Of a DNA stretch of 64,000 nt, positions 4,244-61,471 are shown piece by piece. Origin of the DNA: Bugula neritina (Eukaryota > Animalia > Bryozoa); contig OZ037765.1 in assembly GCA_964035545.1 (NCBI GenBank), forward strand, positions 34,285,504 through 34,349,503. The letters are read 5' to 3'. The notes below the pieces were generated by a model. The model worked only from the letters and a program-made list of their open reading frames with translations. It did not search any database and had not been told where the DNA came from. The position numbers and the translations under genes are program-made. Numbering within the stretch: the first letter of the stretch is position 1; the number at the start of each line of letters is the position of its first letter.

Positions 4244-4680
4244 GTGAGTCACCAGGTTATTCAGTGAGTTACCAGGTTATTATTCAGTGAGTTACCAGGT
4301 TATTCAGTGAGTTACCAGGTTATTCAGTGAGTTACCAGGTTATTCAGTGAGTTACCAGGTTGTTCAGTGAGTCACCAGGTTATTATTCAGTGAGTTACCA
4401 GGTTATTCAGTGAGTTACCAGGTTATTATTCAGTGAGTCACCAGGTTATTCAGTGAGTTACCAGGTTATTCAGTGAGTTACCAGGTTATTATTCAGTGAG
4501 TTACCAGGTTATTATTCAGTGAGTCACCAGGATATTCAGTGAGTTACCAGGTTATTCAGTGAGTTACCAGGTTATTCAGTGAGTGACCAGGTTATTCACT
4601 GAGTTACCAGGTTATTCAGTGAGTTACCAGGTTATTCAGTGAGTTACCAGGTTATTCAGTTAGTCACCAGGTTATTCAGT
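4244..4680. repeat. 20-bp minisatellite (GTGAGTTACCAGGTTATTCA)n, unit A
   Basis: Seen directly. Confidence 0.95.
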
Positions 4681-9027: not shown

Positions 9028-9064
9028 ATGGGTCAACGTAAATCTGTTCCTAGAGACGAATCAA
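9028..9064 (+). CDS. Copy 1 first coding exon MGQRKSVPRDES (N-myristoylation consensus)
   Basis: ATG GGT CAA CGT AAA TCT...TCA A|gttagt; phase 1 joins the 9948 exon in frame; same sequence in copy 2. Confidence 0.7.
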
Positions 9065-12000
9065 GTTAGTAAATCATATAAATATAAATACTACCAGTTA
9101 TAGCTGCAGAATTTTTACATTATACGTTTTTATGAGTTATATGACATTCAGTTGCAGCACTAGAGAAATTGAAGTAGCATTAGTTCTATAATTCTCTTAA
9201 AAAAATTTGCATTGGGGTGTGGTTAAAAATCTCACGAGAACATAACTCTATTTGTTACATTTCTGATCTAGAAACACCAGCTTTGTTCAACTTTTTATTA
9301 CTTTGCTCCTAACTTTTTGTTGACCACAACTGGGTGCATTATTGTATAATGTTATTATACTGAAGCTTATATTATAATAATATATTAAAGTATGATATAT
9401 TATTATTATACTGACTTATATTATAATATATCAAAGTATAATATATTGTTATACTGACATATATTATATTATATCACAAATAAAGTGTTATTATTATTTT
9501 ATATTATATTGTAACTAATATACTAACCTACATCATGTTACGTTACAATAATTGTAGTAACCTTAGTAAACTGTTATAACATGCACATTTTACTGACCTA
9601 TATTGCTTTATATTACATTATATTACACTAGAATACTATAACACATACTGTACAGAAGTATAAACAACATGGCTACCCTTTACCTGTCATCTGCTATAGT
9701 TGATGTCTGCATCAGTTACAGGGATGAGTCATACTCTTAGGTATAAACTGACAAAGTGGGCACAACTTGAATATACATTCAGATTTTATCACAGGATTTC
9801 AATTTAATTATCTGTAATTTTAAGTAGTTAAAATGTAAAATGTTTATTGTGTAACTATTGCCAGTTATGGTTCTATGCATTGATAGTGTTTACAAACATT
9901 CTATTATAATAAAAACTTTTATTTATAAAGTAGTGAATATCTTGTAGGGAAGTACAGTGTGTGGTTCAACACATCCAGTATAGATGGAGCTGATGATGAG
10001 TGGATGGAGAATGATATCACATCCTACACTATAGAAGAGATCAATGATATAAGTAGACATCATACAGTTATAACTCATGTTATACTGAAGCATGACATTC
10101 TTCCAAATATCAACAAACTGTTTCCTCATCTCACACATCTGAAGGTATCTGGAGTAGAGAGTGATGCTAACTGGACCAGGTATTATTTTATTACAATATG
10201 AAACTATATTAATAAGTGAGATATTATCTTGTAGTAGAATGTGGAGTAATCTCCCTTCACAATAACACTAGCTTTAGTAACAATTTTTGTATTATTTACC
10301 TTATTTATTGTATTTCTATTTATGCTTCAATTTAAAGTGAGTTGGTGTCATTCAAACATAGTCTAAACATATAATAGTATAATAGTATGTGATAATTATG
10401 TAGAATTGAATATACTGTTACACCTGTATATAATTATTATGTTACAGCATATCTTCACTGAAGAATCTTGAGGTATTGGATATGTCATTCAGTGACTTAT
10501 CTAAAGGTCTACCAAACAATATATGCAGATCCTTACCATCATTGAGAGAATTGTACATGGAGGTCTGTCAACTTCCAACTCTACCAAAAAGGTGTGTATT
10601 ATATTATACATTACGAATTTATCTGCACTATCTTTATTGAGTCAACTAGACTCTGTGTATATTATACGTCACAAGTCAATTATTGTATTCTATTCTATTA
10701 GATATGTATACTCAGATAGAAATGGTATAACAAATTCTCATTTATTACTCTAATAAATCTGGACAAGTAAATTATTTTGCAGTATAACTATATAACTATG
10801 TTGCATTAAATAGGTTATATTGAGAACAGGTGATAATACAGACCCTTTTCCAATGCCCCCCCCCCCCCCCCGGTACTCAATTTCAAGTTAGGAGTTGAGT
10901 CCTCTTCAACAGGGATTGAGTTAAACCATGTTTTAGAGAGAAAACTAATTACAACTTTAAAGTTTGACTGTTATTTAAAATCTCAACTATGCTATGGAAT
11001 TGTTCTTATAGGAGATAGATATTCTGGTATAGCACACATATTAGCAGTTCAAGAAATATTTTACAAACATTTCTTCATAATAAGTTTTGAAAAAAAGTAA
11101 ATTTGAAAGCCTTTTCGTGATTTTGGTTATTGAGCAATGCTGAAGAGCAGTTGAGGTATGAATTCCTTTATTTATTTGTTGTGCTGGCTGTCACCACTTT
11201 GTTTAGATCTGTTAACCTTTCAATTCCTTGGAAAAGGGTCTACTGATATAAAATAAGCTATACTCTTAAGTGAACTATTACACTGTTGAGTGAAATGTAG
11301 AGTGCTAATGATAATACCCAGGAGTTCAATAGACTTTGATGATTTTCTACCCGTGTGTTATATGTTACAGCATATCTTCACTGAAGAATCTTGAGGTATT
11401 GGATATATCACATAACTACCTATTTGAAGGTCTACCTGACAATATATTCACATCCTTACTGTCACTGAGAAAGTTGTACATGATGGACTGTAACCTGTCA
11501 ACTCTACCAAACAGGTGTGTATCATTTAATTGTACATATATAATAATATAGAGTAGGAGAAACTCTACTAACTATACAATATTAATTCATGACTTGGCTG
11601 TTAAAATATTATTATTGGAGTGGTTTGTGCAGTACATGTGTACTTGATATTCAGGTAAATGACAACTCTCAATACTCTGTTAGTAAAAGTAGATTTGATG
11701 TCATGTTTTTATGGGTTACATGCTGTGGTTATATTCTTACTAAAATATTATACAACATTTCATACCTGTATGTTATGTTACAGCATATCTTCACTGAAGA
11801 ATCTTGAGGTATTAAATATATCATATAATAACCTATCTGAAGGTTTACCTGACAATGTATTCACATCCTTACTATCATTGAGAGAGTTGAACATGGTGAG
11901 GTGTGAACTGCCAACTCTACCAAACAGGTGTGTATTATATTAGCCAATCCAAAGATCAGCACCATGAAAGTCAGTCATATGTTGCTGCCTTTTTCTATCA

Positions 12001-15000
12001 AAACTAAATGCATAAACATTTTACTCACTAACATAGAGCCAAATTTTAACTGTATGTTTTTTGGCATAATACACCCCAATATAGGGGGCAGGTTGAACTG
12101 CCCGTGGGAAAGTTGAATCAATGCGTTTATCCTATAATATAATTTGTTTTATCTATTTTGTAAGTTAAAAAATGACTTATTAAAAAGTAACAATAAGAAT
12201 CATTAAAAAAATTAGAACAAATAACAGAATTTCTGAATGTGATCTATCATTGTAACCATTCAACATCTCAAAGTAGATACTTTAAAACCCAAGCAGCAGC
12301 AGCAGCAAACTGGCAGGAAGCTCTTTTTGCAATTCATCCTTGAACAATGTATGCAGATATGAGATGGGGTCCTCTCATATGACATCAGAAAATACACAGC
12401 GCAGCATGGTTGAGTCTAACCAACTTATTTTGTTGGCTGTTTGAAGGCTCTCAACCTAATGAATTACACTATCCTGCCTTGCTTTACCGTTATAGGTCAT
12501 TGCCCAGCTTTGAAACTATGTTGAAAATATATTCTTGAACTTGACTGATCTATTAAAACTTGAGAAGCTATGCAAGTTTTTATGAAAATGGCAAATTTTT
12601 AATTTGATCATTTTTATGCAAACAGTGTGAAAAATCCTCTCTCACCTGAAAACTTCATTTCATACATTTCCATATGTTTGATAATGTTGTGAATTTATGC
12701 CGTTAAATCTCAATGTGTTATTGAGATTAGAGCATAAGCTGGTATATTGCGAGTGTAATATTCTATTTATCTGAAGCAAGATTTCATACCTGTATTTAAT
12801 ATGTTACAGCATATCTTCACTGAAGAATCTTGAGGTATTGAATATATTAGATAACTACCTATCTGAAGGTCTGCCTGACAATATATTCACATCCTTACTG
12901 TCATTGAGAATGTTGAGCATGGAGAACTGTACACTACCAACTCTACCAAACAGGTGTGTATTATATTATACATTATGAAGTTATCTGCACTATCTTTATT
13001 GAGTCAACTAGACTCTGTGTATATTATACGTCACAAGTCAATTATTGTATTCTATTCTATTAGATATGTACTCAGATAGAAATGGTATAACAACTTCTCA
13101 CTTATTACTCTAATAAATGTGGACAACTCAATAGATCCCATTCAGAGGTCCTCAAGATCTCCCTTACATTTAAGAGTTGTGTCCTCCCAAAAAGAAAATA
13201 GATTGAACAAAATAATCTTGAATTCCTTTTTGTGACTTTGGTTGCTGAGCAATGCTGAAGTGCCACTTCAGCATTGCTCAGTAAAGAAAATCACAAAAAG
13301 GAATTCAAGTTTATTTTTTTCAAAATTCTCTTGAAGAAATATCTTTAAAAAAAATTTTCAACTGCTAATATGTGTGCATATACCAAAATATCCATCTCCT
13401 AAAAAAACAATTCTATAACATAATTATAATTTTAAGTAGCAGCCAAATGTTAAATTTTGAATGGGTTTGCTCTTTAAACAAAAGTTCAACTTACTTACTT
13501 TGAGAAGACGTAACTCTTAAGTGTAAAAGAGATATCCGGGCACCTGAAAAGGGTCTATTATTTCAAATGAAATAAGTTATATTAAATTGAGTTATAAATA
13601 TGTTATAATATTATGCAATGCTCATATATTGTTAAGTATAGAATGTACAGTAATAGTAATAATATGTAGTATAGTTAAATTAACTTTGATTATTTTCTAC
13701 CTGTATATTTTTATGTTACAGCATATCTTCACTGAAGAATCTTGAGGTATTGAATATATCACAGAATAACCTATCTGAAGGTCTACCTGACAATATATTC
13801 ACATCCTTACTATCATTGAGAAAGTTGGGCATAAATAGTTGTAAACTGTCAACTCTACCAAACAGGTGTGTATCATTTAATTACATGTATAATAATAATA
13901 TAGAGTAGGAGAGACTCTACTAACCATACAATATTAATTCATGACTTGACTGTTAAAATATTATTATTGAAGTGGTTTGTGCAGTACATGTGTACTTGAT
14001 ATTCAGGTAAATGACAACTCTCAATACTCTGTTAGTAAAAGTAGATTTGATGTCATGTTTTTATGAGTTACATGCTGTGGTTATATTCTTACTAAAATAT
14101 TGTACAACATTTCATACCTGTATATTATGTTACAGCATATCTTCACTGAAGAATCTTGAGGTATTGTATATGTCAGAGAATAACCTATCTGAAGGTCTAC
14201 CTGACAATATATTCACATCCTTACTATCATTGAGAGAGTTGAACATGAAGAACTGTGAACTGTCAACTCTACCAAACAGGTGTGTATTATATTACATTAT
14301 GAAGTTATCTGCACTGTCTACATCAGGCGCACCAAACGCTGTGTGTACAAGATTTCTTAAGACAATTACTATATTGTATCAGATGTACACAAATAGAAAT
14401 CATGGTATGACAATTTCTCATTCATTACTCTGATATATGTTGTCAACTAAATTATTCCGCAGTGAAATATGTTATATTGAGACTAGGTATGAATATGTTG
14501 CAATGTAAAACTATACTAGAACATAAATGAGCTATTGAGTAAAATGTGGAGTATTAATACGTATTATAGTTAAATTGACTTTGATGATTTTCTACCTGTA
14601 TTTTATAGCAGCATATCTCCACTGAAGAATCTTGAGGTATTGAATATATCAGAGAATAACCTATCTGAAGGTCTACCTGACAATATATTCACATCCTTAC
14701 TATCATTGAGAAAGTTGAACATGAGGAACTGTAAACTGTCAACTCTACCAAACAGGTGTGTATTATATTATACATTATGAAGTTATCTGCACTATCTACA
14801 TCAGGCGCACCAAACGCTGTGTGTACGAGATTTCTTAAGACAATTACTATAATATTGAGTCAGATGTACACATATAGAAATGGTATGACAATTTCTCATT
14901 CATTACTCTGATATATGTTGACAACTAAATTATTCCGCAGTGAAATATGTTATATTGAGACTAGGTATGAATATGTTGCAATGTCAAACTATACTAGAAC

Positions 15001-18000
15001 ATAAATGAGCTATTGAGTAAAATGTGGAGTATTAATACGTATTATAGCTAAATTGACTTTGATGATTTTCTACCTGTATTTTATAGCAGCATATCTCCAC
15101 TGAAGAATCTTGAGGTATTGGATATATCAGAGAATAACCTATCTGAAGGTCTACTTGACAATATATTCACATCCTTAATATCATTGAGAGAGTTGAACAT
15201 GAGGAACTGTAAACTGTCAACTCTACCAAACAGGTGTGTATTATATTATACATTATGAAGTTATCTGCACTATCTACATCAGGCGCACCAAACGCTGTGT
15301 GTACGAGATTTCTTAAGACAATTACTATAATATTGAATCAGATGTACACATATAGAAATGGTATGACAATTTCTCATTCATTACTCTGATATATGTTGAC
15401 AACTAAATTATTCCGCAGTGAAATATGTTATATTGAGACTAGGTATGAATATGTTGCAATGTAAAACTATACTAGAACATAAATGAGCTATTGAGTAAAA
15501 TGTGGAGTATTAATACGTATTATAGCTAAATTGACTTTGATGATTTTCTACCTGTATTTTATAGCAGCATATCTTCACTGAAGAATCTTGAGGTATTGGA
15601 TATATCACAGAATAAGCTATCTGAAGGTCTACCTGACAATATATTCACATCCTTATTATCATTGAGAGAGTTGAAAATGGGTAGCTGTAAACTGTCAACT
15701 CTACCAAACAGGTGTGTATTACATAATAGTGTAGAAAGATAATTATTGTAATAAATATAAGTTAAAAATATATTTTTACATGTGTTCATAAAACTCTAAC
15801 AGATTTGCTACACTGAGATATATTATAATATTATACTGAGATACATTATAATGTTATACTGAGATATATTATAATACTATATATACTGAGATCTATTATC
15901 ATGCTATACTGAAATATATTATAATATTATACTGAGATATATTGTAATATTATAGGGGGTAACAGGGGCACAACGGTCATAGGGGTAGAAAAAGCCGGCG
16001 TAAATATTTTAGGATGTCGTTGAAGCCTTATAACTTTTTACACTCAAAGGCAAGAAGCCTAAATTTTACTAATATTGTTGCCATTGCTTGTCTCTACAAT
16101 GCTTAACTAGTATAACAGCAAAAACTGAAATAAATTTTCCTTGAGGCACATTTATTTTCAATTTGGCCACATGGGGCACAATGGGCCACCTGATTATTGC
16201 ACCCTGATCACTGTTATTAGTTTGTTTGCCCAAAAAGTTGGTTGAACTGTTACTAAAATCTATAAATATAGCCATTTCTGACCTTTTTGTAAAATATCAA
16301 AGACATCATGGTAAGACTACAAAACTACAAGTTGAAGCTCCCCTAATACATACATCTGGTGAGGTTGAAGCTTTGCCATTTTATACATAATACAAAACAC
16401 TCCGCTGTTGCTACTTGCTACTAGTAGATAGTCATGATAATCATTATATATTACACCATTGAGGGAATATACATGCATTTGACTGAAATAAATTGTGATT
16501 TGCTCATTCGCTCTCCCCTTTCCGTTCCGTACTCCAGTCACAAACCTCAGCCATGCATGCACCTTAGCTACAGTTCATTGAAAAAAGTTCACTCAGAATT
16601 TTTGTAGTACATTTTAGTAAAGTTTTTTTTAATAAACGTTGCTCTGAAGTGAAAATAACAAAACATTTTTAGTTTTTAACAGTAATGATAATGGCACTGC
16701 AGAACCGAGTGACGTGCGTTTGATTTTGCCTTCCTCTGCTATCCGTAGTGGCACAAACCGTACAGCTAAAACATGAATTTTGCTGTAGATCTGAAAGAGT
16801 ATCTTTATTTATTTGTATTATTAAATAAATAAAGATCAGATACAACAAAATACGCAAAATTTCAATATATTTGTTGTGTCCCATTGTACCCCGGTACTGG
16901 GGCACAATGGGCCAATTTTTTCGTCATGAAAATTTCATTATTCTGAAAGTTGTGAAAGAGATAGAAACAGGAAACTGGTACCTGTAATAGATAACAGATG
17001 TAGCATTAAGACTAGAGATTATTGAACTAGTAACTTGAAAAACAGACAAATGAGAGCAACAAATGCAAAATTCGGCCGGTTGTGCCTCCCCCCCCCCCCC
17101 CCCCCCGTTACCCCTACTGAGATATAATATAATGTTATACTGAGATATAATATAACGTTATACTGAGGTATATTATAACGTTATACTGAGATATATTATA
17201 ATGTTATACTGACATATATTATAATGTTAGACTGAGATATAATATAATATTATACTGAGACATATTATGATATTATACTGAGATATACTATCATGTTATA
17301 CTAAGATTTATTATAATGTTATACTGAGATATATTATAATGTTATACTAGCTGAGATATATTATAATGTTATACTAAGATATATTATAATATTGATTATT
17401 GTTGTAATTTGCACAATTACTATGCTTGGGTTTTGCTTGCGAGTTCAGTATGCTTTTCTAACTAGTAATTACTAGGGTAGTAGCCGTATAATAATTTTTA
17501 TTATCCACAATAAACACAGTATAAAACATCACATCAATTTACTACAATACAATAGCCATCTAATACTACGTGTACACACTTCGAGTCCTCGCTCACAACA
17601 ACGTGATAATTGTTAACTACCTGAGAACTGTCACTGGGCCGGAAAATCATCTTCCGGTTCTTCTTATTGGATAATACATTGGGGCCTTTAGTATTCCCGA
17701 GGAGATAAGATGGAGGAGAGGAGATAATTCTACATTATGATACTGCGTGACCCACTACAATATTATACTGAGATATATTATAATGTTATACTGAGATATA
17801 TTATAAGATTATACTGAGATATATTATAATGTTATACTGAGGTATACTATAAGATTATACTAAGATATATTATAATGTTATACTGAGATATAATATAATG
17901 TTTTACTGAGATATATTATAATATTATACTGCGATATATTGTAATAGTATAGTGAGATATATTATAAGGGTAATCAATAAACAGTTACTGTGTGATGCAT

Positions 18001-21000
18001 TGTATAATTAACCTGCCTTATTCCATCAAATACCAGGGAGTGTAACTCCAAGCATCTATGAAATATAATTACTAAACAATAGAAATTGCAGAGAATCTTA
18101 TATATTTACTACAGTGGTATTATATTACAAAGTATATTATGGAATTTTATTATTTATATGTTTATACAAAAGCCTTTTCAAAACAACAATTGTATTTTTG
18201 TCAGCGTACAGATTCTACAGAAGTTAGAGGAACTGGACATATCGTCAAGTAACTTCACCAATTTACCATCTCCTGTGTACACACTGAGTAGTCTGCAAGA
18301 ACTGAATATATCTTCCAATTACTCTTTGACATCCTTAGGATCTGAGATATTACAGCTAACTCAACTTCGTACACTGTATGTTAGAAATTGTGATGCTCTC
18401 ACCTCTCCTCCACTGGAAGTATGTCAGAGAGGAGTAGATGCTGTGAAACAATACTACACAGACTTGGCTAAAGGAGCTGGTAGACGTCTTCCATTCGCTA
18501 CTATAGCTGTGCTGGGTAATACGATGGCTGGGAAGACCAGTCTAATTAGAACATTACAGAATGCTGACAGAAAGAGAGTTCTGACCGACAGAGGACCAGA
18601 TGCTGTGAGAGATGAGGCAACAAAGGTGTTCAATGTTGAAGAGTTGGAGGTGGATGGTACAGTACTCCGTCTCATTGATATGGGAGGCCAGGAGGTCTAC
18701 CATATCACTTATCAACTAACACTGAGACAAAATTGCATTCCAGTCATAGTAGTCAACATGGAACAGTACGAAGAGGTTTCAAATGAATCAACACACAGAG
18801 AAGCTGTTAAAAGATTAGCCTTTAATTACATGTCTCACCTCTACCTGGCTAACCCAACCCTGGGTGCTCCAAAACTTATCTTCACACATAAAGATAAGTT
18901 TCAAAATGTGGAATTCCAAGAGCTTCGAACGAACTTTCTAGACACTTCCAATCAGCTGTGTGAGGAGATGATTAAAGAAGAGAAAGCATTGGGTGGAGAA
19001 TTTGCTCAAATCAAACATTTTAGTGAATCAACTAAAGGAGTCTTTCTTGGTGAAGACATTTATGAGGTGGGGAAAGATGATAAGTATGAAGTGTTTGACC
19101 TGATCAGGGAGTCTTTTCTTCAAAGCAGTCACAATTTTGTGAAACCATTACCTTTGGTCTGGGAGGAAGTAAATGAAAAAGTGCTGTCTATTCCCTCTGT
19201 GTACAGCACCTTTGATGAGATACTGAAATACGTGCAAACCGAACTTCAACAAATCGAATCGAGTCAGCTGGACATAATCCTCACATACATGCATGACTGC
19301 GGCAAAGTCTTGTGGTATAAAGATATCAGCTCTCTCCGGCCATACATATTCCACAAGATTCCACAAGTCACCAAACTTCTCTGCGTCTTGTATCATCATG
19401 ATCCTGACATATGGCAGAGTAGAGTTGACAAGTTCCAGCCATATTTTTCAGAGGATGGGATGCCTGTTGAAAAAGAAGACTTCAAAAGATTTGTTAATCA
19501 TTTCACTAAGACTGGTTTAATGATGCAATGCCTTCTCACTCATCTGGTTAAACAAGAAACGCCATTTACTGGTCTGGAAGATGTAAAAGTTGCTGTTTGC
19601 TTGCTCCTCACATTCCGTTTGTTATATGGTCCTTTACCTGCTGATTTCAAAGAGCCCTGTTTTATTGTTCCTCAGTTTGCTAATGACCTCTTTGATACCT
19701 CTTACTCTTCGCCAAAGAATATGCTTCTTCGAGTTGAAACCCAATTCAAGGGCTTAGCGCTACCACAATATGTCTACCAGCAGATGAATGTTGGTTTGCT
19801 AGAGTTGTTTTCCGATGAATTTGCTGTGATTAAAGTGAAGAAAAATGGCGCCAATGTCTATCAAGATGGTATCTACACACAGCTGGTACACGACTACAAA
19901 TCTAGAAAAGTGTCACTCCACGTGTCATCTAATGCTGCCAACATCAGCAGAATGTGGGAGAGACTCATCACCACCAACAACAACATCCTTAGACATGTTC
20001 TAGAAACTTGGAAAGCGAGTAGACCAGTCACTACATGCTACTGTGCTCACTGTCTTCTGCTAGGACTTCCTTGTCCTAATAAAGTGCTGAATCCTCTGTG
20101 GTGTCTTCGCTCCTTGAAACATTCCACACCAACAAGTCCCAGACTGTGCAGCGGATCTTCAACAACCCTGTGTGGTGATGAGGAGATACCCAGTGCTCTT
20201 CTGTATCCATGTACGTGTAATTTTATTTCAAAAATAGTTGATTTCTCTGTGGTTTATTTATCAACTTCTATTATTGGAATAATTTTTGTGGTAACTGACA
20301 GTTTTTCATTCTCCAGGCAGTCCTCTCTATCCAGAAGAAGCTGATAACATAAAAGAATGTGTCAACAAACTGAGATCTGCAAGAGAAGAAACTGCTTCAA
20401 CTGTCCCTGGTAGGATCAGTTGTCTATCATAAACTGTTACTGTTAGAAGTAACATCCTTTGCCTGAGCTCAGTCATATGTAAACAGCAAAGGACAAGAAC
20501 TCATGACCCTCAGTTATATAGGCTCTCTGCAAAAGCTCACACACCTTCAATTGTTTTAATTTATTTGTATAATTATTGACTGAAAAACACTCAAGTACTG
20601 ATTCGATTCATTGTTTATAGTCCTTTTGATACTTAGTATCTGTTACTTAGCACTGAATATATCTCTTTTTCGTTTTATTTTAGAGATGGGTAGAGAAAAG
20701 AATTGGTTAACTCAAACTACCTCAGTCCTTGTTGAAAACGACAACATCAGTGAATGCTCTGATGTTGAAGAGGAAGGATATGCTGACTTCACTAAAGATG
20801 ACCTTGAACCTTTCATATCTCTAGTTGAGGGTATGCAGCTGAAACCTACCAACAATGAACCAGTAAAACAGCTGTTTGACAACGACCGACAGGTAAAACA
20901 AGTTTTTTGATTTCTTTTTAGATCATTGATTAATATTTTTTTGATATTATGGCTCTTCATCTAATTTCTATTACATTTCATACTTGATTTGATTAATCCA

Positions 21001-22781
21001 TTTTCTGTTGTCTACTTTTAGTAATATAAAATTGATTGGTTTGCAGGTTTATGCGATGAGTGACCCTGTTAGAGGTCGTGTCATGATCATAAACAATGAG
21101 AGATTCTTTAGAGATGATGGCAGTGAACTGACTGAGGCAACCCGAGATGGTTCATACATCGACTATGTTAACATCAAAACTCTGTTGAAAGACATGGGAT
21201 TTGTTGTAGCCAATGAAGATGATCCTCTGTTTGACCTGAGTAAACAGGTTACTGTATCAATTTCTTATCTTTTCCTGTAGTTTATTCTCCCCAGGCTGTA
21301 GCTAGCTGTGATATAGCCTATAGCAAGTATTTTTACTGCAGAACCGAGGCATTGTATTCCAACAAATCTACAATAATATATTGTTAAATTGTATTCAAAT
21401 TATTAGTTTTTCTCAGTTCTGAGTTTTAGTTTAGAAACAGCAGCACTACTTAATAGTTCATCTTTGTTATAAATGTTTTAGTGTAATTTTGAAGCAGCTT
21501 TTGCTCGTGCGTAGAAACATTTACTTATCCAAACTTGATTTTACACACCATTATATACTTTTATTTTGCCAGGAGATATTATCAGAAGTGAGGAAGGAGA
21601 CCACCGACAAAGACCACAAAGATCTTGGCATGTTCATTCTAGTCATCATGTCACACGGAACTTCTGGAAACATCTTCTATGACAAATACTGTAAACCTGT
21701 CAACTTGTCAGAAGTCAAAGATTTACTCTCAGCTAGTAACTTTCTTGCCATGAGAGGAAAACCCAAACTCATCATCTTCCATGCTTGTTCTGGCAGTGAG
21801 TAATGCAGAGTTGTTCGTCATGTTACTAGAACTAGCAGTTAGATTGCATAGTTTCCTATAACTATAACATTAATTAATTTAAGGAATCATTATTTTCAAG
21901 ATGCCTTATGTTATTGGAGTATGCCTATGTGGAAGTGAGCTACACCTCATAACTGGAATCCAATAAACAGTGCTGTGTAATAGAGTTCTGCTTGTGAATC
22001 CAGTCCTAACTTATTACTTACCAACAAATCACAGAGTCTACATTATATGTATTTCATATACAGGCAGAGCTGACTTTGGTAATGCTGCACAGTCGCAAAG
22101 CCCAGACACCGTCTCACCACCAACGCCAACCCCTCTACCCTCATCTTCTGCAACAGCTGGGAGTGAGTCTTCTGCAGGTCAAAATGTGTCTCCAAATATT
22201 CACTTTGATAAATTCACTCACCTAGATGCTGATGACTTCTACATTGTGAAGCCAAGTACAGAAAGTTAGTGAGAAGAAAATTATATTTGAGTTGACTAAA
22301 ACTTTTATTGGTGCAAATTAAAATATTTGTTGCATGTAAATAAAACTATAGTAAGAATTAAATAGAAAGTATTTCACATATCAATTTGGCCTTCATATTT
22401 AACTGCTCATTTTCATGTGTTGCAGCTTACAAGGCTGGTAGGAATGAGAATTATGGTACCTGGTTTATCAGAATACTGGTGGCTACATTCTACAGACACA
22501 GCTGTCACAGAGATGTTAGTGAGCTGTTTAGGATAGTAAGTACTTCAGTATTACTCTTTGTATGATACTGTGGAGTGTGTTGAGTCATCAGCTTTATATT
22601 TCTCTTATATTTATACTTACAGATACAAGACAGAGTTAGACGAGTCAGTATTGCATATTGTAAGAAGACAGGAGATGAAGCAGCTGGTGGTAATGTACCT
22701 AATTGTCAGGAATGTACTTTCACTCACCTCAGAAAACTTTTCTTCTTCCCAGAGTTCCATGGCAGACAACTCCCACAGTGA
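9028..22781 (+). CDS. LRR-Roc-COR-caspase fusion gene, copy 1 (19 coding exons, ~1588 aa)
   Basis: Hand-spliced exons: 9028-9064, 9948-10179, nine 144-nt LRR exons (starts 10448, 11371, 11784, 12810, 13722, 14136, 14612, 15090, 15568), 18205-20210, 20317-20409, 20684-20892, 21047-21247, 21573-21795, 22064-22264, 22426-22535, 22623-22781 (TGA). All introns GT-AG with compatible phases; total 4767 nt. Motifs: MGQRKS, LRRs, GNTMAGKTS/DMGGQ/THKD, SHG...HACSG, GTWFI. Confidence 0.85.
9948..10179 (+). CDS. Copy 1 exon 2 (N-terminal cap / degenerate LRR)
   Basis: cttgtag| ... ACC AG|gtatt; lies in ORF 9959-10201; contains LFPHLTHLKV. Confidence 0.75.
10448..10591 (+). CDS. Copy 1 LRR cassette exon 1
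   Basis: 144 nt, phase 2-2; ISSLKNLEVLDMSFSDLSKGLPNNICRSLPSLRELYMEVCQLPTLPK. Confidence 0.85.
10840..11241. mobile_element. MITE in LRR intron 1-2
   Basis: 14-bp TIR AGACCCTTTTCCAA / TTGGAAAAGGGTCT. Confidence 0.65.
11371..11514 (+). CDS. Copy 1 LRR cassette exon 2
   Basis: 144 nt; ISSLKNLEVLDISHNYLFEGLPDNIFTSLLSLRKLYMMDCNLSTLPN. Confidence 0.87.
11784..11927 (+). CDS. Copy 1 LRR cassette exon 3
   Basis: 144 nt; ISSLKNLEVLNISYNNLSEGLPDNVFTSLLSLRELNMVRCELPTLPN. Confidence 0.87.
12810..12953 (+). CDS. Copy 1 LRR cassette exon 4
   Basis: 144 nt; ISSLKNLEVLNILDNYLSEGLPDNIFTSLLSLRMLSMENCTLPTLPN (not in the ORF track). Confidence 0.87.
13130..13559. mobile_element. Related MITE, opposite orientation, in LRR intron 4-5
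   Basis: Ends AATAGATCCCATTCAG / CTGAAAAGGGTCTATT; body is reverse-complementary to 10900-11145; internal hairpin. Confidence 0.6.
13722..13865 (+). CDS. Copy 1 LRR cassette exon 5
   Basis: 144 nt; ISSLKNLEVLNISQNNLSEGLPDNIFTSLLSLRKLGINSCKLSTLPN. Confidence 0.87.
14136..14279 (+). CDS. Copy 1 LRR cassette exon 6
   Basis: 144 nt; ISSLKNLEVLYMSENNLSEGLPDNIFTSLLSLRELNMKNCELSTLPN. Confidence 0.87.
14612..14755 (+). CDS. Copy 1 LRR cassette exon 7
   Basis: 144 nt, TAGCAG acceptor; ISPLKNLEVLNISENNLSEGLPDNIFTSLLSLRKLNMRNCKLSTLPN. Confidence 0.87.
15090..15233 (+). CDS. Copy 1 LRR cassette exon 8
   Basis: 144 nt, TAGCAG acceptor; ISPLKNLEVLDISENNLSEGLLDNIFTSLISLRELNMRNCKLSTLPN. Confidence 0.87.
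15568..15711 (+). CDS. Copy 1 LRR cassette exon 9
   Basis: 144 nt, TAGCAG acceptor; ISSLKNLEVLDISQNKLSEGLPDNIFTSLLSLRELKMGSCKLSTLPN. Confidence 0.87.
15812..17967. repeat. 23-bp minisatellite (ACTGAGATATATTATAATGTTAT)n interrupted by insertions; also 37817-38173 and 40245-40420
   Basis: Seen directly, in the intron before the Roc-COR exon. Confidence 0.88.
15955..17114. mobile_element. Non-autonomous Tc1/pogo-like DNA element
   Basis: TA-GGGG(G)TAAC...GGCACAAC / GTTGTGCC...GTTACCCC-TA ends; internal GGGGCACAATGGGCCA motifs; an inverted end fragment recurs at ~35010-35148. Confidence 0.7.
18205..20210 (+). CDS. Copy 1 large exon: 3 LRRs + LRR-Roc linker + Roc GTPase + COR + Cys-rich segment
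   Basis: Inside ORF 18086-20344. PPLEVCQRGVDAVKQYY linker, P-loop GNTMAGKTS (18515-18541), DMGGQEVYHITYQ (G3), THKD (G4), COR-like PLVWEEV and YMHDCGKVLWY, then CYCAHC. Confidence 0.92.
21047..21795 (+). CDS. Copy 1 caspase large subunit (p20) exons 21047-21247 and 21573-21795
   Basis: VYAMSDPVRGRVMIINNERF...TRDGSYID...GF; FILVIMSHG (His 21654-21656); GKPKLIIFHACSG (Cys 21786-21788). Confidence 0.92.
22064..22781 (+). CDS. Copy 1 caspase intersubunit linker and small subunit (p10) exons 22064-22264, 22426-22535, 22623-22781
   Basis: Ser/Pro-rich linker with QSPD-T; DFYIVKPSTETYKAGRNENYGTWFIRIL; ends TFTHLRKLFFFP, a typical caspase C-terminus. Confidence 0.88.
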
Positions 22782-23494
22782 GTGACGTCTGCAGCACATC
22801 ACGTGTTCACATGCAGCACACACAGACCTGCCATATTAGCTAGACACTTGCAGCTGCTAGACAGACTTGTCATGTCTTTGATTTTATGCAATCATTTCTA
22901 ATTTTATTAGTTTATATATTTTTCATGTACCTGTGACATTATTTTTATTCTGCTAAGTTTTTTATACAAGCTTTTCAATTTTACCAATTTATTTGTAAAC
23001 AGTTGATAGACGTTATCACATATTGGTGAGCAGTAGCTATTCCATACTGTAAGACCTGATCAATATCTGCTGGGAGTGGAAAGTCATGCTTAGACCCCAC
23101 ATTTAAGTTATTAATGGGATCAATAACACATTTAAGTTAGCAACTTTTCCCATTACTGCTTTTTCAGTTTCTTAGCTGCTATAAATAGAGACATGATGGG
23201 TTACACAAAGGATTTTATGAATATTTATATTATATAATATGTAAAAGTATGATAGTAATAATAGGTAGCTTTTTCTTTGCTATGTACAAGCTATCAAATT
23301 ATAGCTGTTGTAGTTAAACACTGACAGACTGTAGCAGTATTTTAACTTCTGTTGTAACTGAAACCTCAGTGATCAGTCAATCAATATATAGTTGTGATTT
23401 ATTGTTAGTTTGTGGTTTTAATGATTTCTTTTAGTTGCCACTTATGCAGTTTTTATATCAAAAGTGATTGTATGTTTTTATAAATATATTATAT

Positions 23495-24083
23495 TATATC
23501 TACTCTGTACACTACATACTATATCTACTCTATACACTACACTATATCTACTCTGTACACTCTACTATATCTACTCTATACACTGTACTATATCTACTCT
23601 ATACACTATACTATATCTACCCTATATACTATACTATATCTACTCTATACTATACTATATCTACTCTATACACTATACTATATCTACTCTATACTATACT
23701 ATATCTACTCTATACACTACACTATATCTACTCTATACACTATACTATATCTACTCTATATACTATACTATATCTACTCTATACACTATACTATATCTAC
23801 TCTATACACTATACTATATCTACTCTATACACTATACTATATCTACTCTATACACCATACTATATCTACTCTATACACTATACTATACTATATCTAGTCC
23901 TTACTATATCTACTCTATACACCATACTATATCTACTCTATACACTATACTATATCTACTCTATACACTATACTATATCTACTCTATACACCATACTATA
24001 TCTACTCTATACACTATACTATATCTACTCTATACACTATACTATATCTACTCTATACACTATACTATATCTACTCTATACCA
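23495..24083. repeat. 23-bp satellite at the unit A/B junction
   Basis: Seen directly. Confidence 0.95.
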
Positions 24084-24641
24084 TATAGCGCGGGCTACTG
24101 AAAGGAAATATTTCATGGCGAGGGCCACATTGTAAATTTTAGCTTCGGCTGGGGGCCACAGCATCAGTAATTTGAAATAGTTACTTTATTTCAAATGCCT
24201 GTGAGTCATTACACAATGAAGTCCCAATAATTAGGTACTGCAAGGTGCATGTCTCTAGCATATATAAAAATGGAGCATTTAAAAGGCTGGTGTCCACTCG
24301 AATTCATATACCTGTGCAAATAAATTTATCTGTCAAGTTTTTGAGGGTCACATGAATGTCAGCGGGAGAGGGGGGCACATCCGGAGCCACCTGTTGGACA
24401 GCCCTGTTTTAGGCAACAAGCAATGAATGTTTTAGGAGTTGTATTCCTTTCAAGCGAACATTTACTTTGCTTCAGATATGGTTTTCAACAAAAATTATAG
24501 CATTCAAGTTATATATGAAAGCACGTCTTTATAAAAAAAATTCATGGGTGAATTTGACTATAAAACCTGAATTTGTGTATCATTCTAGTAAGCGAACGAC
24601 GGGATAAAAACACTACCTATGCAGTTCCGGCGTAAAAAGTC

Positions 24642-27600
24642 ATGGCTGCTACCAGTAAAACAACCGCAACTACAATAAATGATACTTGGGCCATTGCTTC
24701 CTTTGCAAAGGCGAATGAGTTTTTGGGATTTTCTTCATTTGACACTAGCAATGTTATTTTGACAAATAGGCAGTCTATGTCAATATATAAGGTAGTATAT
24801 TTCATTTTCTGTAATGCTAATTTGAGGATTTTTTATAAACATAATAAAATTAATGTTGTACTTGTTGTACTAGTACTAGTTGTAGTACAGTACTACTAGA
24901 CACTAGTATAAGTATAACTACAACCAGTAGTAGTTATAGTAGTATTAGTACTACTACAACTACTAGTAGCACTAATAGTACTACTACTAGTACTAAACGG
25001 CTAAAACGCTAAAACAGTAACCTGGTTACTGTTTTAGCGTTCAGTACTAGTAGTAGTACTAGTAGTAGTACTAACCAGTGCCCGGTCCAGAGGCAGCAGA
25101 CGTTGTAGTAGTACTACTACTAGTACTAGTGGTAGACTGGTAGGACCTGTACTTTGACTTGCAGTAAAACTAAAAGTCATACTTATAGTTATTACGTAGT
25201 TACACTTGACTTTGAATTTCAGTTTTTTTGCTTTTAGTTTTAGTGTTCATAGTACTAGTACAACTACTACTTAATCTAGTTTATTTTTAACAGTAGCAGT
25301 AACTGGCTAACTCTAGTAACTTAAACTGGTGTGAGTATATCTAAACTAAGATTAGTAAAAACACAACTTTAGTTAGTTACTGTAACACTAACTATTAGTT
25401 AGAGTCTACTTCATGACTTGTATTTGAACGAATAGTGATAATCACAGTATGAATAACTCTATAACTAATAACTATAAGCGAAGCTAAGTTAAAGTGTTTT
25501 AGTAAAATGAAATAACAATTTACTCTTAGTGACTAAACACTCGGTCAAAGTCATTCACGGTCGCTAAAAAGTGAATAGTGCTATAATAGTAAAGTCAATT
25601 CGGCATAGGGCTAATGCAGCTCTTAGTGATGCCGAGTCAAACAGTTATTAATTATTATGATAATCGATGTAAACACACAGGAACTTTTTCAACCTGATTT
25701 TGAATTGACTAATTCGTAATAACTATAAGTATTGGATTAAATCAGTTGATACTTGCATTTTAATTAGGCCTAAGCCTTTCGGTGAATGGCACTGAGTTCT
25801 AATAAATATTTAAAGTAAATTTCAGTGATAACTATTGATTATTAGCATGTGATGACACACATTTACTAACTTAGCCTTTAATTACTTTAAAATTTATTTT
25901 ATTCATACTCAGTCATTGAGTGATTAGCATAAATCAACCATTGTAGTTCAATTCTGAATCATACTCAATGACAATAGCCTTTATGTTTTTGCTAAACTAA
26001 ATCTAAATGGCCTTAAAATTTATACCATGATGAGTTGTTTGTATCGCTTTTAAAATGATCTTAGAATTTTGTTATTGAGTTAAGGAAATAAATTTAGTTA
26101 TTTCAGAGTTTCGCCGGCCTGAATGAGTATTCTCTGCAGTACAGCCTCTTTCTCATATAATTCACTGTGGAATAAATTATTACTGAAAGTTAAGGCAACA
26201 ATTACTCTACATGTGTTTATATGCTTCATTCATGAGAGTAGTTCTCAGTTTAGAATATTATTAAATACTAGAGTTTGAGTTGTGATAAACTTAGGTGAGT
26301 GATCAGCAGACAGTATCAAGTTGTACTCTCAAATCAGAGAGCAGTTTCTGTCTGCCTGTGGTTTATGATCATGAAGAAGAAAATTATGTTGGTTTGGTTG
26401 AGAATCTTGGAAAGAAGAGACTTTGTGTCTGGACAAATGAACTTTCTAACTACAAGGACTGGAAGAAGAAACTGGTAAATCTCTCACTTTGAATATTTCA
26501 CTTGTTTTGTGATTTATAAGATAATATGTTTACGATAACACAATTTGTTGGTCATTTGGTGGAGTATATTTATAGCATTAGAAATGTTGAAGTAGTGGGA
26601 ATAGAATATGGAGAATGATAACCTAATGATGGTTGGTTCATAATACAAGTGTAACTGTTGTAGTTATCAACTGAGGTGACTGAACTGGTAGAAGTAGAGA
26701 AGACAGAACCACTGGTGGTCACATCTAATAACTGTGTGTGCTGGTTGTCTCATGTGGAGAACACTTTGCTGTCTGTCCATCTGCTGCCTCCAGATCTGAG
26801 AGATGCTGACGTGGAGATTAGTCAGTATGAAAGTTACAGATGGAGTAATAGAACTGAGATTGTCTACATTGTGACTGTTGATGTGAGTATCTCAATGTGT
26901 CAGTATGGTGTCACAATGTGTCAGTATGGTGTCACAATGTGTCAGTAAGGTCTCACACCTAATCAGTAGAGTGTCACAGTAGAGTGTCGCAGTAGAGTGT
27001 CGCAGTAGAGTGTCGCAGTAGAGTGTCGCAGTAGAGTGTCACAGTAGACTGTCACAGTAGAGTGTCACAGTAGGGTGTCACAGTAGAGTGTCACAGTAGG
27101 GTGTCACAGTAGAGTGTCACAGTAGAATGTCACAGTAGAGTGTCACAGTAGAGTGTCACAGTAGAGTGTCACAGTTGTTGACATGCATCATAATCATTGC
27201 TGTTGAAATATCTACAGTTTCTGTTGTGTTATTTCAGGGACGACACCTTGTATATAAGTTACAGTTCAACGACAAGCAGGTGTTTGGCAAGTCTACGCAG
27301 GTGTTTCTCAACTACACAGATGTGACATCAGTGTGTAGAGTTGTCCCTCATGCTGAGTCTAATTACATTGCTACTAGTGAGTCTGATACTATTGAATCTA
27401 TACTGTGTCTCTGTATGACGTCACCTTTACAATAACCAGTTTATCTGAAATACTCTATACAGGTGGTAAGGGTGAGATACTATACTCTACCGGTACATCT
27501 GAAGAAGTTATTTCCTCTCTCAACTCACAGTTTTCTACTCAGTGTGTCTCTCTTCACCTACTAGACTCTGACCAGCTTCTCATTGCAACATCTCACAGCT

Positions 27601-29350
27601 CTACGAATACAGGCTAGTATAGTTTACCTTTTCTGAAGATGATTGTTCTAGTAAAGTAGTTCTACTGTAACTGTATGCCTCCTTTACTTGAATATGAGTA
27701 GATGTAAGCCATTCAGTGTAGCTGTTCTCATAGCACCTGTTTAGACGTGTCACAGCTCAAGTATGGTGACATGTGCTGGTCTTGTAGGTGTCTTACTTAT
27801 ATTCAGTATCAAGTTCAGAACTACGAGGATTCTAAAGAGTCTGGACAGTGAGCTCTACGGTGACAAACCTGTGACTCTTCTACCTCCATACATACTGACT
27901 CACACGGAGAGCTCATTGCAGGCTCACTCATATAAGTACAGCAAGTTGACACTAAGGAGCATGATGGGCAGTTTGAGACTGTCTGCTGATTCTGAGTTGG
28001 TGAGTCACCAGGTTATTCAGTGAGTTACCAGGTTATTCAGTGAGTCACCAGGTTATTCAGTGAGTTACCAGGTTGTTCAGTGAGTCACCAGGTTATTCAG
28101 TGAGTTACCAGGTTATTCAGTGAGTTACCAGGTTATCCAGTGAGTTACCAGGTTATTCAGTGAGTCACCAGGTTATTTAGTGAGTTACCAGGTTATTCAG
28201 TGAGTTACCAGGTTATTCAGTGAGTTACCAGGTTATTATTCAGTGAGTTACCAGGTTATTCAGTGAGTTTCCAGGTTATTACTCAGTGAGTTACCAGGTT
28301 ATTCAGTGATTTACCAGGTTCTTCAGTGAGTTACCAGGTTATTCAGTGAGTTACCAGGTTATTCAGTGAGTTACCAGGTTATTTTTCAGTGAGTTATCAG
28401 GTTATTCAGTAAGTTACCAGGTTATTCAGTGAGTTACCAGGTTATTCAGTGAGTTACCAGGTTATTCAGTGAGTTACCAGGTTATTTTTCAGTGAGTCAC
28501 CAGGTTATTCAGTGAGTTACCAGGTTATTCAGTGAGTTACCAGGTTATTCAGTGAGTTACCAGGTTATTCAGTGAGTTACCAGGTTGTTCAGTGAGTCAC
28601 CAGGTTATTCAGTGAGTTACCAGGTTATTCAGTGAGTTACCAGGTTATTCAGTGAGTTACCAGGTTATTCAGTGACTTACCAGGTTATTCAGTGAGTCAC
28701 CAGGTTATTCAGTGAGTTACCAGGTTATTCACTGAGTTACCAGGTTATTCACTGAGTTACCAGGTTATTCACTGTGTTACCAGGTTATTCACTGAGTTAC
28801 CAGGTTATTCAGTGAGTTACCAGGTTATTCAGTGAGTTACCAGGTTATTCAGTGAGTTACTAGGTTATTCAGTGAGTTACCAAGTTATTCAGTGAGTTAC
28901 CAGGTTATTCAGTAAGTCACCAGGTTATTCAGTGAGTCACCAGGTTATTCAGTGAGTTACCAGGTTATTCAGTGAGTTACCAGGTTATTCAGTGATTGCA
29001 TTGCTGTGATTTTAGTTTGAGGTTTAAGAATTGCTTTTTTTTTCAAACTTCTCCAACACCCGAGAGTGCATATCAACCTAATTTGTGTTTTATAGAATTA
29101 TCCTCCAGTCTGATTTTACCATGGGTGTTGATTCCAAAGGAGATGCTAGAGTTGACCTTCACTTCCCACTGGACCAGCTCTGAAGGTGTGTTTATATGTT
29201 TTCAGTAAAGTCTAGTTTGGCTGAAGCAGAAATTCACAAAGTTCTCTGCACCATAAAACCAATTTGTCCTGTGATGAGTTTCTAGGCTCTTCTCAGAATC
29301 TAGTCATTTATATTCTACTTCAAGAGTATTGAATAAATGGCAGCAAGTAA
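24642..29350 (+). pseudogene. NOL11: NOL11-like partial gene / pseudogene, unit B (best preserved)
   Basis: Exons 24642-24791, 26295-26474, 26664-26882, 27238-27376 are open and in phase. The next exon lacks a canonical AG (ttacaa) and GT (gctagt); exon 27788-27999 follows; downstream exons are degenerate and no 3' half is visible. Confidence 0.65.
28000..28994. repeat. 20-bp minisatellite, unit B
   Basis: Seen directly. Confidence 0.95.
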
Positions 29351-35428: not shown

Positions 35429-38400
35429 ATGGGTCAACGTAAATCTGTTCCTAGAGACGAATCAAGTTAGTAAATCATATAAACACTACGTAACCATGGT
35501 AACTACAGAACTTTTATATTTTACTTTTATGTGTTATGACATTCAGGTGCAGTAGTGGAGAAGTTGAGATAGCATAAGTTCTTTATTGTTCATAACAAAT
35601 TATACGTTGGGGTTTGGGTTTACATTGTCACGAGAACACAACTTCTTTTGCTACATTTCTGATCTAGAAACACATGCGATTTTCATTTCTTTACCCTGCA
35701 CTAATTAGGACCACAACTGAGTAATATTTTGCTGGTGTTTATTATATAATGTTATATATTATATAATATTATATACTGATTGTTAGTTATATAATGATTT
35801 AGCTTCGCCCATGTATTTCTATATACAGTGTTGAGTGAGATCTCTTCATTTAAATTCTCATGAGAACATAACTCCTTTTGTTACATTTATAATCTACAGT
35901 TTCATTACTTTGCACCTAGCTCTGTTTTCACCATAGCTGAATATTATATTGTTATAGTGTTTATATACTATAACTATTATGCTATAACTATTATACTATA
36001 ACTATTATGCTATAACTATTATACTATAACTATTATACTGTAACTATTATACTATAACTATTATACTATAACTATTATACTATAACTATTATACTGTAAC
36101 TATTATACTATAACTATTATACTATATCTATTATACTGACTTATATTATATTATATTGTATTATATTATATTATATTATATTATATTATATTGTATTGTA
36201 TTGTATTGTATTGTATTGTATTATATTGTATTATAATATATTATATTATATTATATTATAACATATACTGTACAGAAGTATAAACAACATGGCTACCCTT
36301 TCACCTGTCAGAATATCTCACAGGATGTATTTTGAAGAACTTATAAAATCTCCAAGTTTACTTAAACACTGTTTATAGTGTTGAGACACTCTATTATTTG
36401 ATATCAAAGTTATTATTTATAAAGTGGTGAATATTTTGTAGAGAAGTACTATGTGTGGTTCAACAAATCTAGAATAGATGGAGCTAATAATGAGTGGATG
36501 TGGAATGATATTAAATCCTACACTATAGAAAAGATCAAGAAGAAAAGTAGACATCATACAGTGACTCATGTTGTACTGAAGTATGACATTCCTCCAAATA
36601 TCAACACACTGTTTCCTCATCTCACACATCTGAGGGTATCTAGAGTATACAGGAATGCTGACTGGACCAGGTATTATGTTGTTATTATAATTTATAACTA
36701 TATTCATAAGTGAGATATTATCTTGTAGTAGAATGTGGAGTAATCTCCCCTCACAATAACACTATAGCTTTAGTAACAACTTTTGTATTATTTACCTTAT
36801 TTATTGTATTTCTATTTATGTTTCAATTTAAAGTGAGTTGCTGTCATTTAAACATAGTCTAAACATATAATGTATAATAGTATGTGATAATTATGTAGAA
36901 TTGAATATACTGTTACACCTGTATATAATTATTATGTTACAGCATATCTTCACTGAAGAATCTTGAGGTATTGAATATGTCATTCAGTGACTTATCTAAA
37001 GGTCTACCAAACAATATATGCAGATCCTTACCATCATTGAGAGAATTGTACATGGAGGTCTGTCAACTTCCAACTCTACCAAACAGGTGTATATTATATT
37101 ATACATTATGAAGTTATCTGCACTATCTTTATTGTGTCAACTAGACTCTGTGTATATTATACGTCACAAGTCAATTATTGTATTCTATTCTATTAGATAT
37201 ACTCAGATAGAAATGGTATAACAACTTCTCACTTACTCCTCTAATAAATTATTTTACTGTGTAACAGTTTATATTGGCACCAGGTATAAAATTTGTTATA
37301 ATATAAAATTATATCCATATAAGTTAGATACTCTCTTGTAGCTGATTGTAATGTGAAGCTATTATACATTTCTCTTTCTCTTTGAAATAACCTGAGTCTT
37401 AGTAGCAACTGCTGTATTATTTATCTGGCTCTTAGTGGTCAGATCAAGAGTTAAGTAAAACTAAATTATTCTTATTCAATAATAATACTTTTATATAGTA
37501 GGTCAACTTACTACCTTTTCGTTATGTTACAGCATATCTTCACTGAAGAATCTTGAGGTATTGAATATATCAGCGAATAAGCTATCTGAAGGTCTACCTG
37601 ACAATATATTCACATCCTTACTATCATTGAGAGAGTTGAACATGAAGTACTGTAAACTCCCAACTCTACCAAACAGGTGTGTATTATATTATAGTGTAGA
37701 ATGATACTGTAATATATATAATATATAAACATAAAGTCAATATAATTGTGTAGAAACTTATGACATAATATTTTACCATAATCAGAGTGATTTATAATAT
37801 TATAATTATGTCTATTATGAGATATATTATAATATTATACTGATATATATTATAATGTTATACTGAGATATATTATAATATAATACTGAGATATAATATA
37901 ATGTTATACTGAGATATATTATAATGTTATACTGAGATATAATATAATGTTATACTTATATATAATATAATATTATACTGAGATATATTATAATGTTATA
38001 CTGAGATATATTATAATGTTATACTGAGATATATTATAATATTATACTGCGATATATTGTAATAGTATAGTGAGATATATTATAATGTTATACTGAGATA
38101 TATTATAATGTTATACTGAGATATATTATAATATTATACTGAGATATAATATAATGTTATACTGAGATATAATCAGGGATGTAGTGGTACCCATACGGTC
38201 CCATACGCCGTATGGCCTAAAAGAAAATAGGCTGTTCTTGGCCATACGCCCGTATGGGCATATATTTTTTGAAAGTGTTAGCCTAGGGCCACACTGTGCG
38301 TGCGTGATAAATAAAGCTTTCATTTTTAAATCGCACTCCCTTTCAATAAAACGTAATTTACTGGAATTTAGCACTAAAATAAAGAAATTGGGCTCGCTTA

Positions 38401-54807: not shown

Positions 54808-54906
54808 CTCTAATACTTATAAAACTGAAGTAATATTTATGCTGTATTATACGAATAGAGACATTTAATCTATTTGATTACATCCTATTACACATCTATA
54901 CTACTT

Positions 54907-58113: not shown

Positions 58114-58301
58114 ATCACGTGATCATATAAACACTATTACTTGCAGTGCAGCACTAACTAGCACACACTAAGAGGGAAGTCACTTATCCCTTCCTAGACA
58201 TAGTGAGAAGATAATCAAGTTAGTTTATGGAGAATATTATGTAACATGTGCAGATGGTGAAGAGTATCTCAACTCACCTGCTGACTTCATTTTAATTCAC
58301 T
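58114..58301 (+). promoter_or_regulatory. Putative core promoter / 5'UTR exon, unit C module 1
   Basis: ATCACGTGAT 58114-58123, TATAAA 58126-58131, donor at 58302. Confidence 0.45.
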
Positions 58302-61452: not shown

Positions 61453-61471
61453 ATGGGTCAAAGTGAATCAA
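61453..61471 (+). CDS. Second tandem first coding exon MGQSES
   Basis: Duplicate of 58687-58705. Confidence 0.55.

Follow-up and report, generated by a model that had tools for sequence, protein, structure and literature searches.

The locus described here raises the question of whether one animal gene may join a repeat sensor, a GTPase switch and a protease in a single polypeptide. It is located in a stretch of 64,000 nucleotides of the bryozoan Bugula neritina (GenBank assembly GCA_964035545.1, contig OZ037765.1, positions 34,285,504 to 34,349,503 of the forward strand), referred to below as the window. In this window, leucine-rich repeat (LRR) exons, an exon encoding a Roc GTPase and a COR domain, and caspase exons succeed one another between positions 9028 and 22781. 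The gene encodes a Roco protein with a protease of the caspase fold, and is neither an NLR nor a death-fold initiator caspase. In the best reading of the data, it is a member of an expanded bryozoan family, and its product would be a sensor-protease of innate defence that resides in the cytosol and is probably anchored by a lipid.

Gene structure and continuity of the chain

The gene comprised 19 exons on the forward strand (9028–22781), and all 18 introns were of the GT...AG type. The joined coding sequence of 4767 nt encoded 1588 amino acids and a stop codon, with no internal stops. Pfam scans were run on single exons, where LRR, Roc and Peptidase_C14 were matched, and the joined protein was translated locally for the frame check and for comparison with the tandem paralogue (copy 2; 35429–45209, forward strand), which has 12 exons and a stop-free frame of 1250 amino acids. 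The initial annotation had proposed that the LRR, Roc-COR and caspase exons form one stop-free frame; the 1588 codons confirm this, and the coordinates given for both linker exons were exact. It had also stated that every junction is kept in copy 2, which holds for the junction types and phases but not for the number of LRR cassette exons, which is two in copy 2 (at 36943 and 37533) and not nine.

The order along the chain of 1588 residues was a Met-Gly-x-x-x-Ser start, the LRRs, Roc-COR, a tether of about 100 residues and the caspase (His1386/Cys1430). The start exon (9028–9064, +) encodes MGQRKS, a candidate N-myristoylation signal, and exon 2 (9948–10179, +) encodes an N-terminal cap or degenerate LRR, the most divergent part between the two copies; this exon had no Pfam match, and its Atlas leads were weak and LRR-like. 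Nine LRR cassette exons follow (10448–15711, +), each of 144 nt, in phase 2/2 and with two LRRs, starting at 10448, 11371, 11784, 12810, 13722, 14136, 14612, 15090 and 15568. The large exon 12 (18205–20210, +) encodes three LRRs, Roc and a COR domain with a Cys-rich end, its P-loop lying at 18515–18538. Linker exon 1 (20317–20409, +) has 31 codons in phase 1/1 and corresponds to a single helix predicted after COR in a homologue from the bryozoan Watersipora, and linker exon 2 (20684–20892, +; phase 1/0) encodes an acidic flexible tether with ECSDVEEEG, a candidate self-cleavage region. The caspase large subunit (21047–21795, +) is encoded by exons 21047–21247 and 21573–21795, with the His codon at 21654–21656 and the Cys codon at 21786–21788. 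A Ser/Pro-rich intersubunit linker and the small subunit complete the frame (22064–22781, +) in exons 22064–22264, 22426–22535 and 22623–22781, the last with the stop codon; homologous small-subunit exons were found in L001, L002, L004, L005 and L011.

From the genomic sequence, the LRR-Roc-COR part and the caspase are very probably made as one fused chain. The linker exons are under purifying selection between the copies (ratio of non-synonymous to synonymous substitution rates, dN/dS, 0.25; Fisher p 0.002) and their phases are kept in relatives L002 and L004, so that the arrangement is not due to chance. The phase series 2,1,1,0,0,1,1,0 and the 110-nt exon were retained in L002 (53% identity) and in L004 (34%), with an open frame in each; both have a phase-1/1 equivalent of linker exon 1, and an equivalent exon is also present in L005. 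In ten Watersipora RefSeq models, which are predictions, a single chain comprises Roc-COR together with a caspase that has both catalytic motifs, and one of these models, mapped to its gene, showed the same exon plan as the B. neritina gene. Caspase exons followed COR in 10/10 bryozoan loci with enough downstream DNA. Thirteen runs guessed as RNA, from four studies, contained 18–25% of the sampled words, which fits expression of the gene or of close paralogues. No transcript-derived protein was found among the Logan/ENA matches checked: L003, L004, L007 and L008 appear to be genomic, and P0109 comes from the annotation of a genome.

That an LRR-Roc-COR gene and a caspase gene stand head to tail, joined solely by gene prediction, is extremely improbable. 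Such an arrangement would agree with the annotation of the paralogue L009 (assembly GCA_010799875.2, which we take to be B. neritina), where it is divided into two calls, with the RefSeq model P0068, which has another terminal exon despite the caspase exons downstream, and with the stop at 20342–20344 that is met by read-through of intron 12. But in each of the loci checked, the COR exon is free of stops and closes with a phase-1 donor that is conserved; the introns between it and the caspase exons measure just 106, 274 and 154 nt, and neither AATAAA nor ATTAAA occurs between COR exon and caspase. Conservation extends to the linker exons, and copy 2 lacks the Met with which linker exon 2 begins in this gene.

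The Watersipora locus L011, from which model P0068 derives, has linker exon 2 and all caspase exons 1–8 kb downstream, yet the terminal exon of the model is an unrelated one; this ending may be a misprediction or a caspase-less isoform. Given this ending of P0068 and the predicted nature of RefSeq models, some isoforms may be without a caspase. Two Watersipora models considered as caspase-less paralogues were rejected as such, since caspase exons lie downstream of both.

GTPase, protease and repeat modules

The nucleotide-binding domain was a Ras-like Roc GTPase rather than a NACHT or NB-ARC ATPase. Pfam Roc matched above its cut-off (E 5e-7), and the motifs G1 GNTMAGKT, G3 DMGGQ and G4 THKD were complete; together with the catalytic His and Cys of the caspase they bear out the intact GTPase and protease motifs of the initial annotation. 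Across the family, the P-loop GK[ST] was intact in 63/65 rows. The match to Pfam COR-A was weak (E 0.012), and this doubt is settled by the predicted structure of the large exon, in which COR directly follows Roc. The AlphaFold2 model (pLDDT 90, pTM 0.87) retrieved LRRK1 (E 2e-23) and the Roco of C. tepidum, CtRoco (E 2e-20), in Foldseek, with about 15% identity to the bacterial protein; the matches to LRRK1, LRRK2 and CtRoco extend along the entire large exon. It gave a VIA Z of 26.4 to the LRRK2 Roc-COR (residues 92–668; 460 residues, root-mean-square deviation 4.1) and of 15.5 to the isolated COR domain 3DPT. Between copies, amino-acid identity was 94–95% in Roc, COR and caspase, and dN/dS was 0.14 for Roc, 0.29 for COR and 0.35 for the caspase, indicating purifying selection. 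The Watersipora protein P0090 (XP_067948342.1) combines a degenerate P-loop with an intact QACGG caspase and is a possible GTPase-dead variant.

The catalytic caspase exon matched Pfam Peptidase_C14 with E 5.5e-11, matches to this family being found on exons 15 and 16; in homologues the caspase domain was complete (E 1.5e-36), and the homologue model matched procaspases. The nearest solved relative is caspase-3, with whose p17 subunit the protein aligns around SHG and QACRG (E 4e-8), placing MSHG (His1386) and HACSG (Cys1430) as the His-Cys dyad. The canonical QACxG (x = R, Q or G) was replaced by HACSG in both copies and by QACSG in most Watersipora homologues. This non-canonical pentapeptide lowers confidence in a standard specificity, not in the caspase fold. 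Both equivalents of the S1 Arg residues are present (TRDG, GRNE) in the gene and in most relatives, and the S1 Gln is replaced by His.

The structure of the COR-caspase junction was taken from the model of the Watersipora homologue P0074, used as a stand-in. In this model, the tether consists of one helix, about 50 disordered residues and two short helices. An acidic motif of the S-D-x-S-D type is common to the relatives. Neither CARD, DED nor death domain was matched by Pfam on linker exon 2 or in full-length homologues, and the homologue model is devoid of a death fold, as the initial annotation had anticipated; a death-fold domain in the linker was thus rejected.

The MGQRKS start agrees with the consensus for N-myristoylation. 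The three remaining start exons of the window have starts of this type, as do the Watersipora proteins P0068, P0195 and P0199 and a candidate start of L002. Where an 18-nt deletion shortens two further start exons, Gly2 and Ser6 were retained. Neither a signal peptide nor a membrane helix was evident in the exons of the gene, and the protein is predicted to be cytosolic.

The LRR cassettes expanded by block duplication. Their introns were duplicated in blocks (1~4, 2~5 and 6~7~8) at 96–99% identity; introns 6–8 are 98–99% identical, and the adjoining exons differ at 4–11 of 144 bases. At exposed strand positions, the proportions of non-synonymous and synonymous differences were pN 0.28 and pS 0.06, versus 0.03 and 0.08 in the framework, with about 38 replacement changes to 1 silent in exposed codons and a ratio of 8 to 9 for the framework (p 3e-5); as the repeats compared belong to a single array and are not independent, these values are a strong hint rather than a formal test. 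Exons 1–2 gave a dN/dS of 2.45 between copies (26 non-synonymous and 3 synonymous changes), which is not significantly above 1 (p 0.15) and differs from that of Roc-COR-caspase (p 2e-5). The excess of replacements at exposed LRR codons would fit an immune receptor, and the diversifying change there supports the receptor-like character first suggested for the gene.

Proposed mode of activation and biological role

The protein is probably a defence receptor with an active protease. Its activation through proximity of caspases controlled by Roc-COR is a proposal that we consider evenly balanced between acceptance and rejection. According to it, the N-terminal Gly would be myristoylated and hold the protein at the membrane, where the variable LRR face would bind foreign or altered-self ligands. 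Binding would alter the nucleotide state and the dimer or cluster state of Roc-COR, so that two tethered caspase domains would meet and dimerise in the manner of initiator caspases, which are activated by induced proximity. The caspases would then cut themselves in the intersubunit linker, and possibly also in the acidic tether, and the protease would cleave death or alarm substrates with no need of a CARD/DED adaptor. Proximity is favoured over rigid allostery because the tether is long and predicted to be disordered.

Several points weigh against this reading. The initial annotation had proposed that the ligand drives a dimerisation which activates the caspase, but Roc-COR may already be a dimer in its resting state, in which case the switch could run either way. 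The active-site pentapeptide is atypical, being HACSG here and QACSG in most bryozoan relatives instead of QACRG. The paralogue L009 (GCA_010799875.2, 8000–8100) lacks the catalytic Cys motif, with ILLA in place of IIQAC, and is a possible pseudo-caspase member. The selection comparison, finally, draws on the non-independent repeats of a single array.

Among Rocos, CtRoco has been studied best; it forms a dimer in the empty and GDP-bound states and is a monomer with GTP (PMC5714945), so the Roc-COR switch could run in either direction. This behaviour would favour the main alternative, the opposite course of events, in which a GDP-bound Roc-COR dimer, around which the LRRs are wrapped at rest, keeps the caspases non-productive until ligand and GTP open the dimer and the freed or clipped caspases pair. 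With a dimer as the resting state, the constant proximity of the caspases would require restraint, and the conserved acidic motif of the tether could serve as the release site. However, a long tether predicted to be disordered would be poor at restraining caspases rigidly, and the nucleotide-dimer rule of a bacterial protein may not transfer at about 15% identity. We regard such a release from restraint as unlikely, if still to be reckoned with.

It is very improbable that the caspase domain is a bait or scaffold which binds caspase inhibitors of pathogens or other caspases, the output passing via Roc-COR. The atypical pentapeptides (HACSG, and ETCSG in L002) and the loss of the Cys in L009 would suit this role, and in some conflict systems of bacteria inactive effectors of the caspase type are common (PMC7159879). 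Against it, nearly all of the members examined retain His and Cys, the gene and most relatives retain both equivalents of the S1 Arg residues, and the caspase evolves under purifying (dN/dS 0.35) and not diversifying selection, unlike a decoy.

Bryozoans are colonial and recycle their zooids by cell death. A role apart from pathogens, in recognition of self and non-self between colonies, with LRR variation serving allorecognition, or in tissue turnover (polypide regression, metamorphosis), was also considered. Allorecognition genes likewise show diversifying selection and changes in copy number, and part of the stretch is present in the runs guessed as RNA from four studies. On the other hand, the protein is predicted to be cytosolic, with neither a signal peptide nor a membrane helix evident, many dispersed paralogues fit a receptor repertoire better than a single histocompatibility locus, and the same design exists in amphioxus, which is solitary. 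We consider this role improbable.

Returning to defence, a broader proposal would see in bryozoans a large family of single-chain, membrane-anchored receptors whose LRR cassettes were gained, lost and diversified and in which the Roc-COR dimer cycle directly gates the caspase, a GTP-switched counterpart of the inflammasome separate from those of amphioxus and bacteria. As a whole it is put forward tentatively, with more doubt than confidence. If the protease is indeed gated by Roc-COR, this would be an animal death or immune receptor that dispenses with both a STAND ATPase and a death-fold adaptor. Its protease would also report naturally on the cycle of Roco proteins between monomer and dimer, which is still debated for LRRK2: self-cleavage of the caspase would be a simple signal making it testable which nucleotide or oligomer state of a Roco is the "on" state, with a bearing on LRRK2. 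Little has been described of bryozoan immunity, and the family is also a candidate basis for the recognition of pathogens in this group.

Known systems, origin and setting of the window

According to the initial annotation, no animal Roco with a caspase effector is known to have been characterised. The domain order LRR-Roc-COR-caspase is not new, as it is catalogued in bacteria and present in amphioxus and in Watersipora models; the narrower statement stands, no characterised animal Roco-caspase having been found. The literature searched, which lacked most subscription papers, contained neither a description of the bryozoan family nor experiments on a Roco-caspase of any organism. The bryozoan expansion of the design is real and apparently undescribed, and the same receptor design thus occurs in bacteria, amphioxus and bryozoans; an architecture restricted to bryozoans was rejected on these grounds.

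In bacteria, LRR, AP-GTPase (Roc), COR and caspase form a predicted counter-invader system (Kaur et al. 2021; PMC8195603, text, Fig. 6D and Figure 6 source data). It shares with the bryozoan family the order of fast-evolving N-terminal LRRs, Roc-COR and a C-terminal effector of the caspase clan, and the predicted role in defence; it differs in that the bryozoan family has a protease of animal type, a spliced gene with cassette exons for the LRRs, and a Roc-COR that groups apart from the sampled bacterial ones. Rapidly evolving LRRs and multiple paralogues are both found in the bryozoan family. Unlike in the systems of Kaur et al. (2021), the effector does not vary among its paralogues, a caspase being encoded at all ten loci with enough DNA; exchange of effectors was observed in amphioxus only. 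The nearest Atlas cluster to a Watersipora homologue was a cyanobacterial COR+CHAT family (score 0.85), which is a lead only. A recent bacterial source is not supported, as Roc-COR stands apart from the four bacterial Rocos sampled and the caspase is of animal type.

In amphioxus, Zhang et al. (2008; PMC2575513) described "LRRs-caspase" proteins as a direct link from recognition to apoptosis and put forward the idea of a "shortcut receptor", with no mention of Roc-COR in the text. These proteins are likely the same as the amphioxus LRR-Roc-COR-caspase models found here. Twelve amphioxus proteins (e.g., XP_002614028.1 / C3XQ16) combine LRRs, Roc-COR and a QACRG caspase in one chain. Caspase exons are broken at matching places in both groups, whereas the tether is of 9–24 residues in amphioxus and about 60–100 in bryozoans, the amphioxus LRRs and Roc-COR lie in one exon (one gene checked), sister genes there carry death, GT4 or OTU effectors, and the caspases of the two groups are 26–27% identical, no closer than unrelated caspases. 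The large LRR-Roc-COR family of Branchiostoma (P0214–P0253, P0114, P0167) includes close relatives that differ in the C-terminal effector, which may be a caspase, a death domain, a GT4 glycosyltransferase, an OTU protease or combinations of these, mirroring the effector swapping of bacteria.

In the Roc-COR tree, which took in four bacterial Rocos and left out the rows with no clear P-loop span (P0045, P0160, P0116, P0185), bryozoan and amphioxus proteins formed separate groups with 100/100 support that were not sisters in the best tree; a single clade of both was not rejected by the approximately unbiased test (p 0.10). We lean towards separate origins of the bryozoan and amphioxus fusions, in view of the differing tethers, the low caspase identity and the Roc-COR groups that are not sisters; the matching intron positions in the caspase would speak for a shared one.

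The nearest named relatives of the gene are those of Watersipora subatra, and Watersipora homologues are named "MFHAS1 homolog" in databases. With MFHAS1/MASL1, LRRK1/LRRK2 and the Roco of C. tepidum the family shares the LRR-Roc-COR core and its fold. The COR domain is followed by no enzyme in MFHAS1 and by a kinase in LRRK1/2, in contrast to the caspase and many copies of the bryozoan family. NLR inflammasomes, the Apaf-1/caspase-9 apoptosome and the caspase-8 death-inducing signalling complex would work alike, with a repeat sensor, a nucleotide switch and a proximity-activated caspase, but the bryozoan protein has no NACHT/NB-ARC ATPase and no CARD, DED or PYD, its switch being a GTPase and its caspase part of the same chain. 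Brown-algal ROCO candidate immune receptors are an expanded LRR-Roc-COR family with shuffling of phase-2 LRR cassette exons and diversifying selection (PMC3341825, PMC11378527). They have one LRR per 72-nt exon, versus two per 144 nt in the bryozoan gene, and the C-terminal peptidase of their group 3 is IPR009003 (trypsin-like clan) and not a caspase (PMC11378527). Unusual fusions were noted among P0255, P0257, P0201 and P0160, comprising an LRRC8/pannexin-like membrane region with LRRs and caspase (ENA), ankyrin repeats with caspase (Logan) and LRR-Roc-COR with a weak CARD match (Logan).

The window is AT-rich animal DNA in tandem units of roughly 22–26 kb each, and a JGI contig showed 86% DNA identity to it, introns included. 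Copy 2 was rejected as an assembly-haplotype artefact in view of its 92% DNA identity, its different number of LRRs and the three spacer units in the window. The window starts in the 3' spacer of an earlier copy, and its end (55695–64000) contains the upstream region and start exon (MGQSES; 58687–58705, +, repeated at 61453) of a further copy twice, neither exon 2 nor any LRR exon of it falling within the window and the remainder of that gene lying outside; the array probably has at least four units.

A retroelement of the long interspersed nuclear element type (52357–54816, −), with two long frames and an RVT_1 match (E 3e-32), lies in the spacer of the third unit and is missing at the corresponding place in the first. 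A spacer stretch at 786–1073 (−), with copies at 24620–24832 and 46535–46747, gave a weak match to the Pfam WS/DGAT C-terminal domain (E 6e-4, just under cut-off); it was duplicated along with the gene, both later copies have a shorter open frame, and it may be a gene fragment or a chance match. Minisatellite arrays, whose length differs by copy, accompany the tandem unit (1–330, 4244–4680, 23484–24088, 27997–28995, 50020–51084 and 59983–63563) and create spurious long open reading frames.

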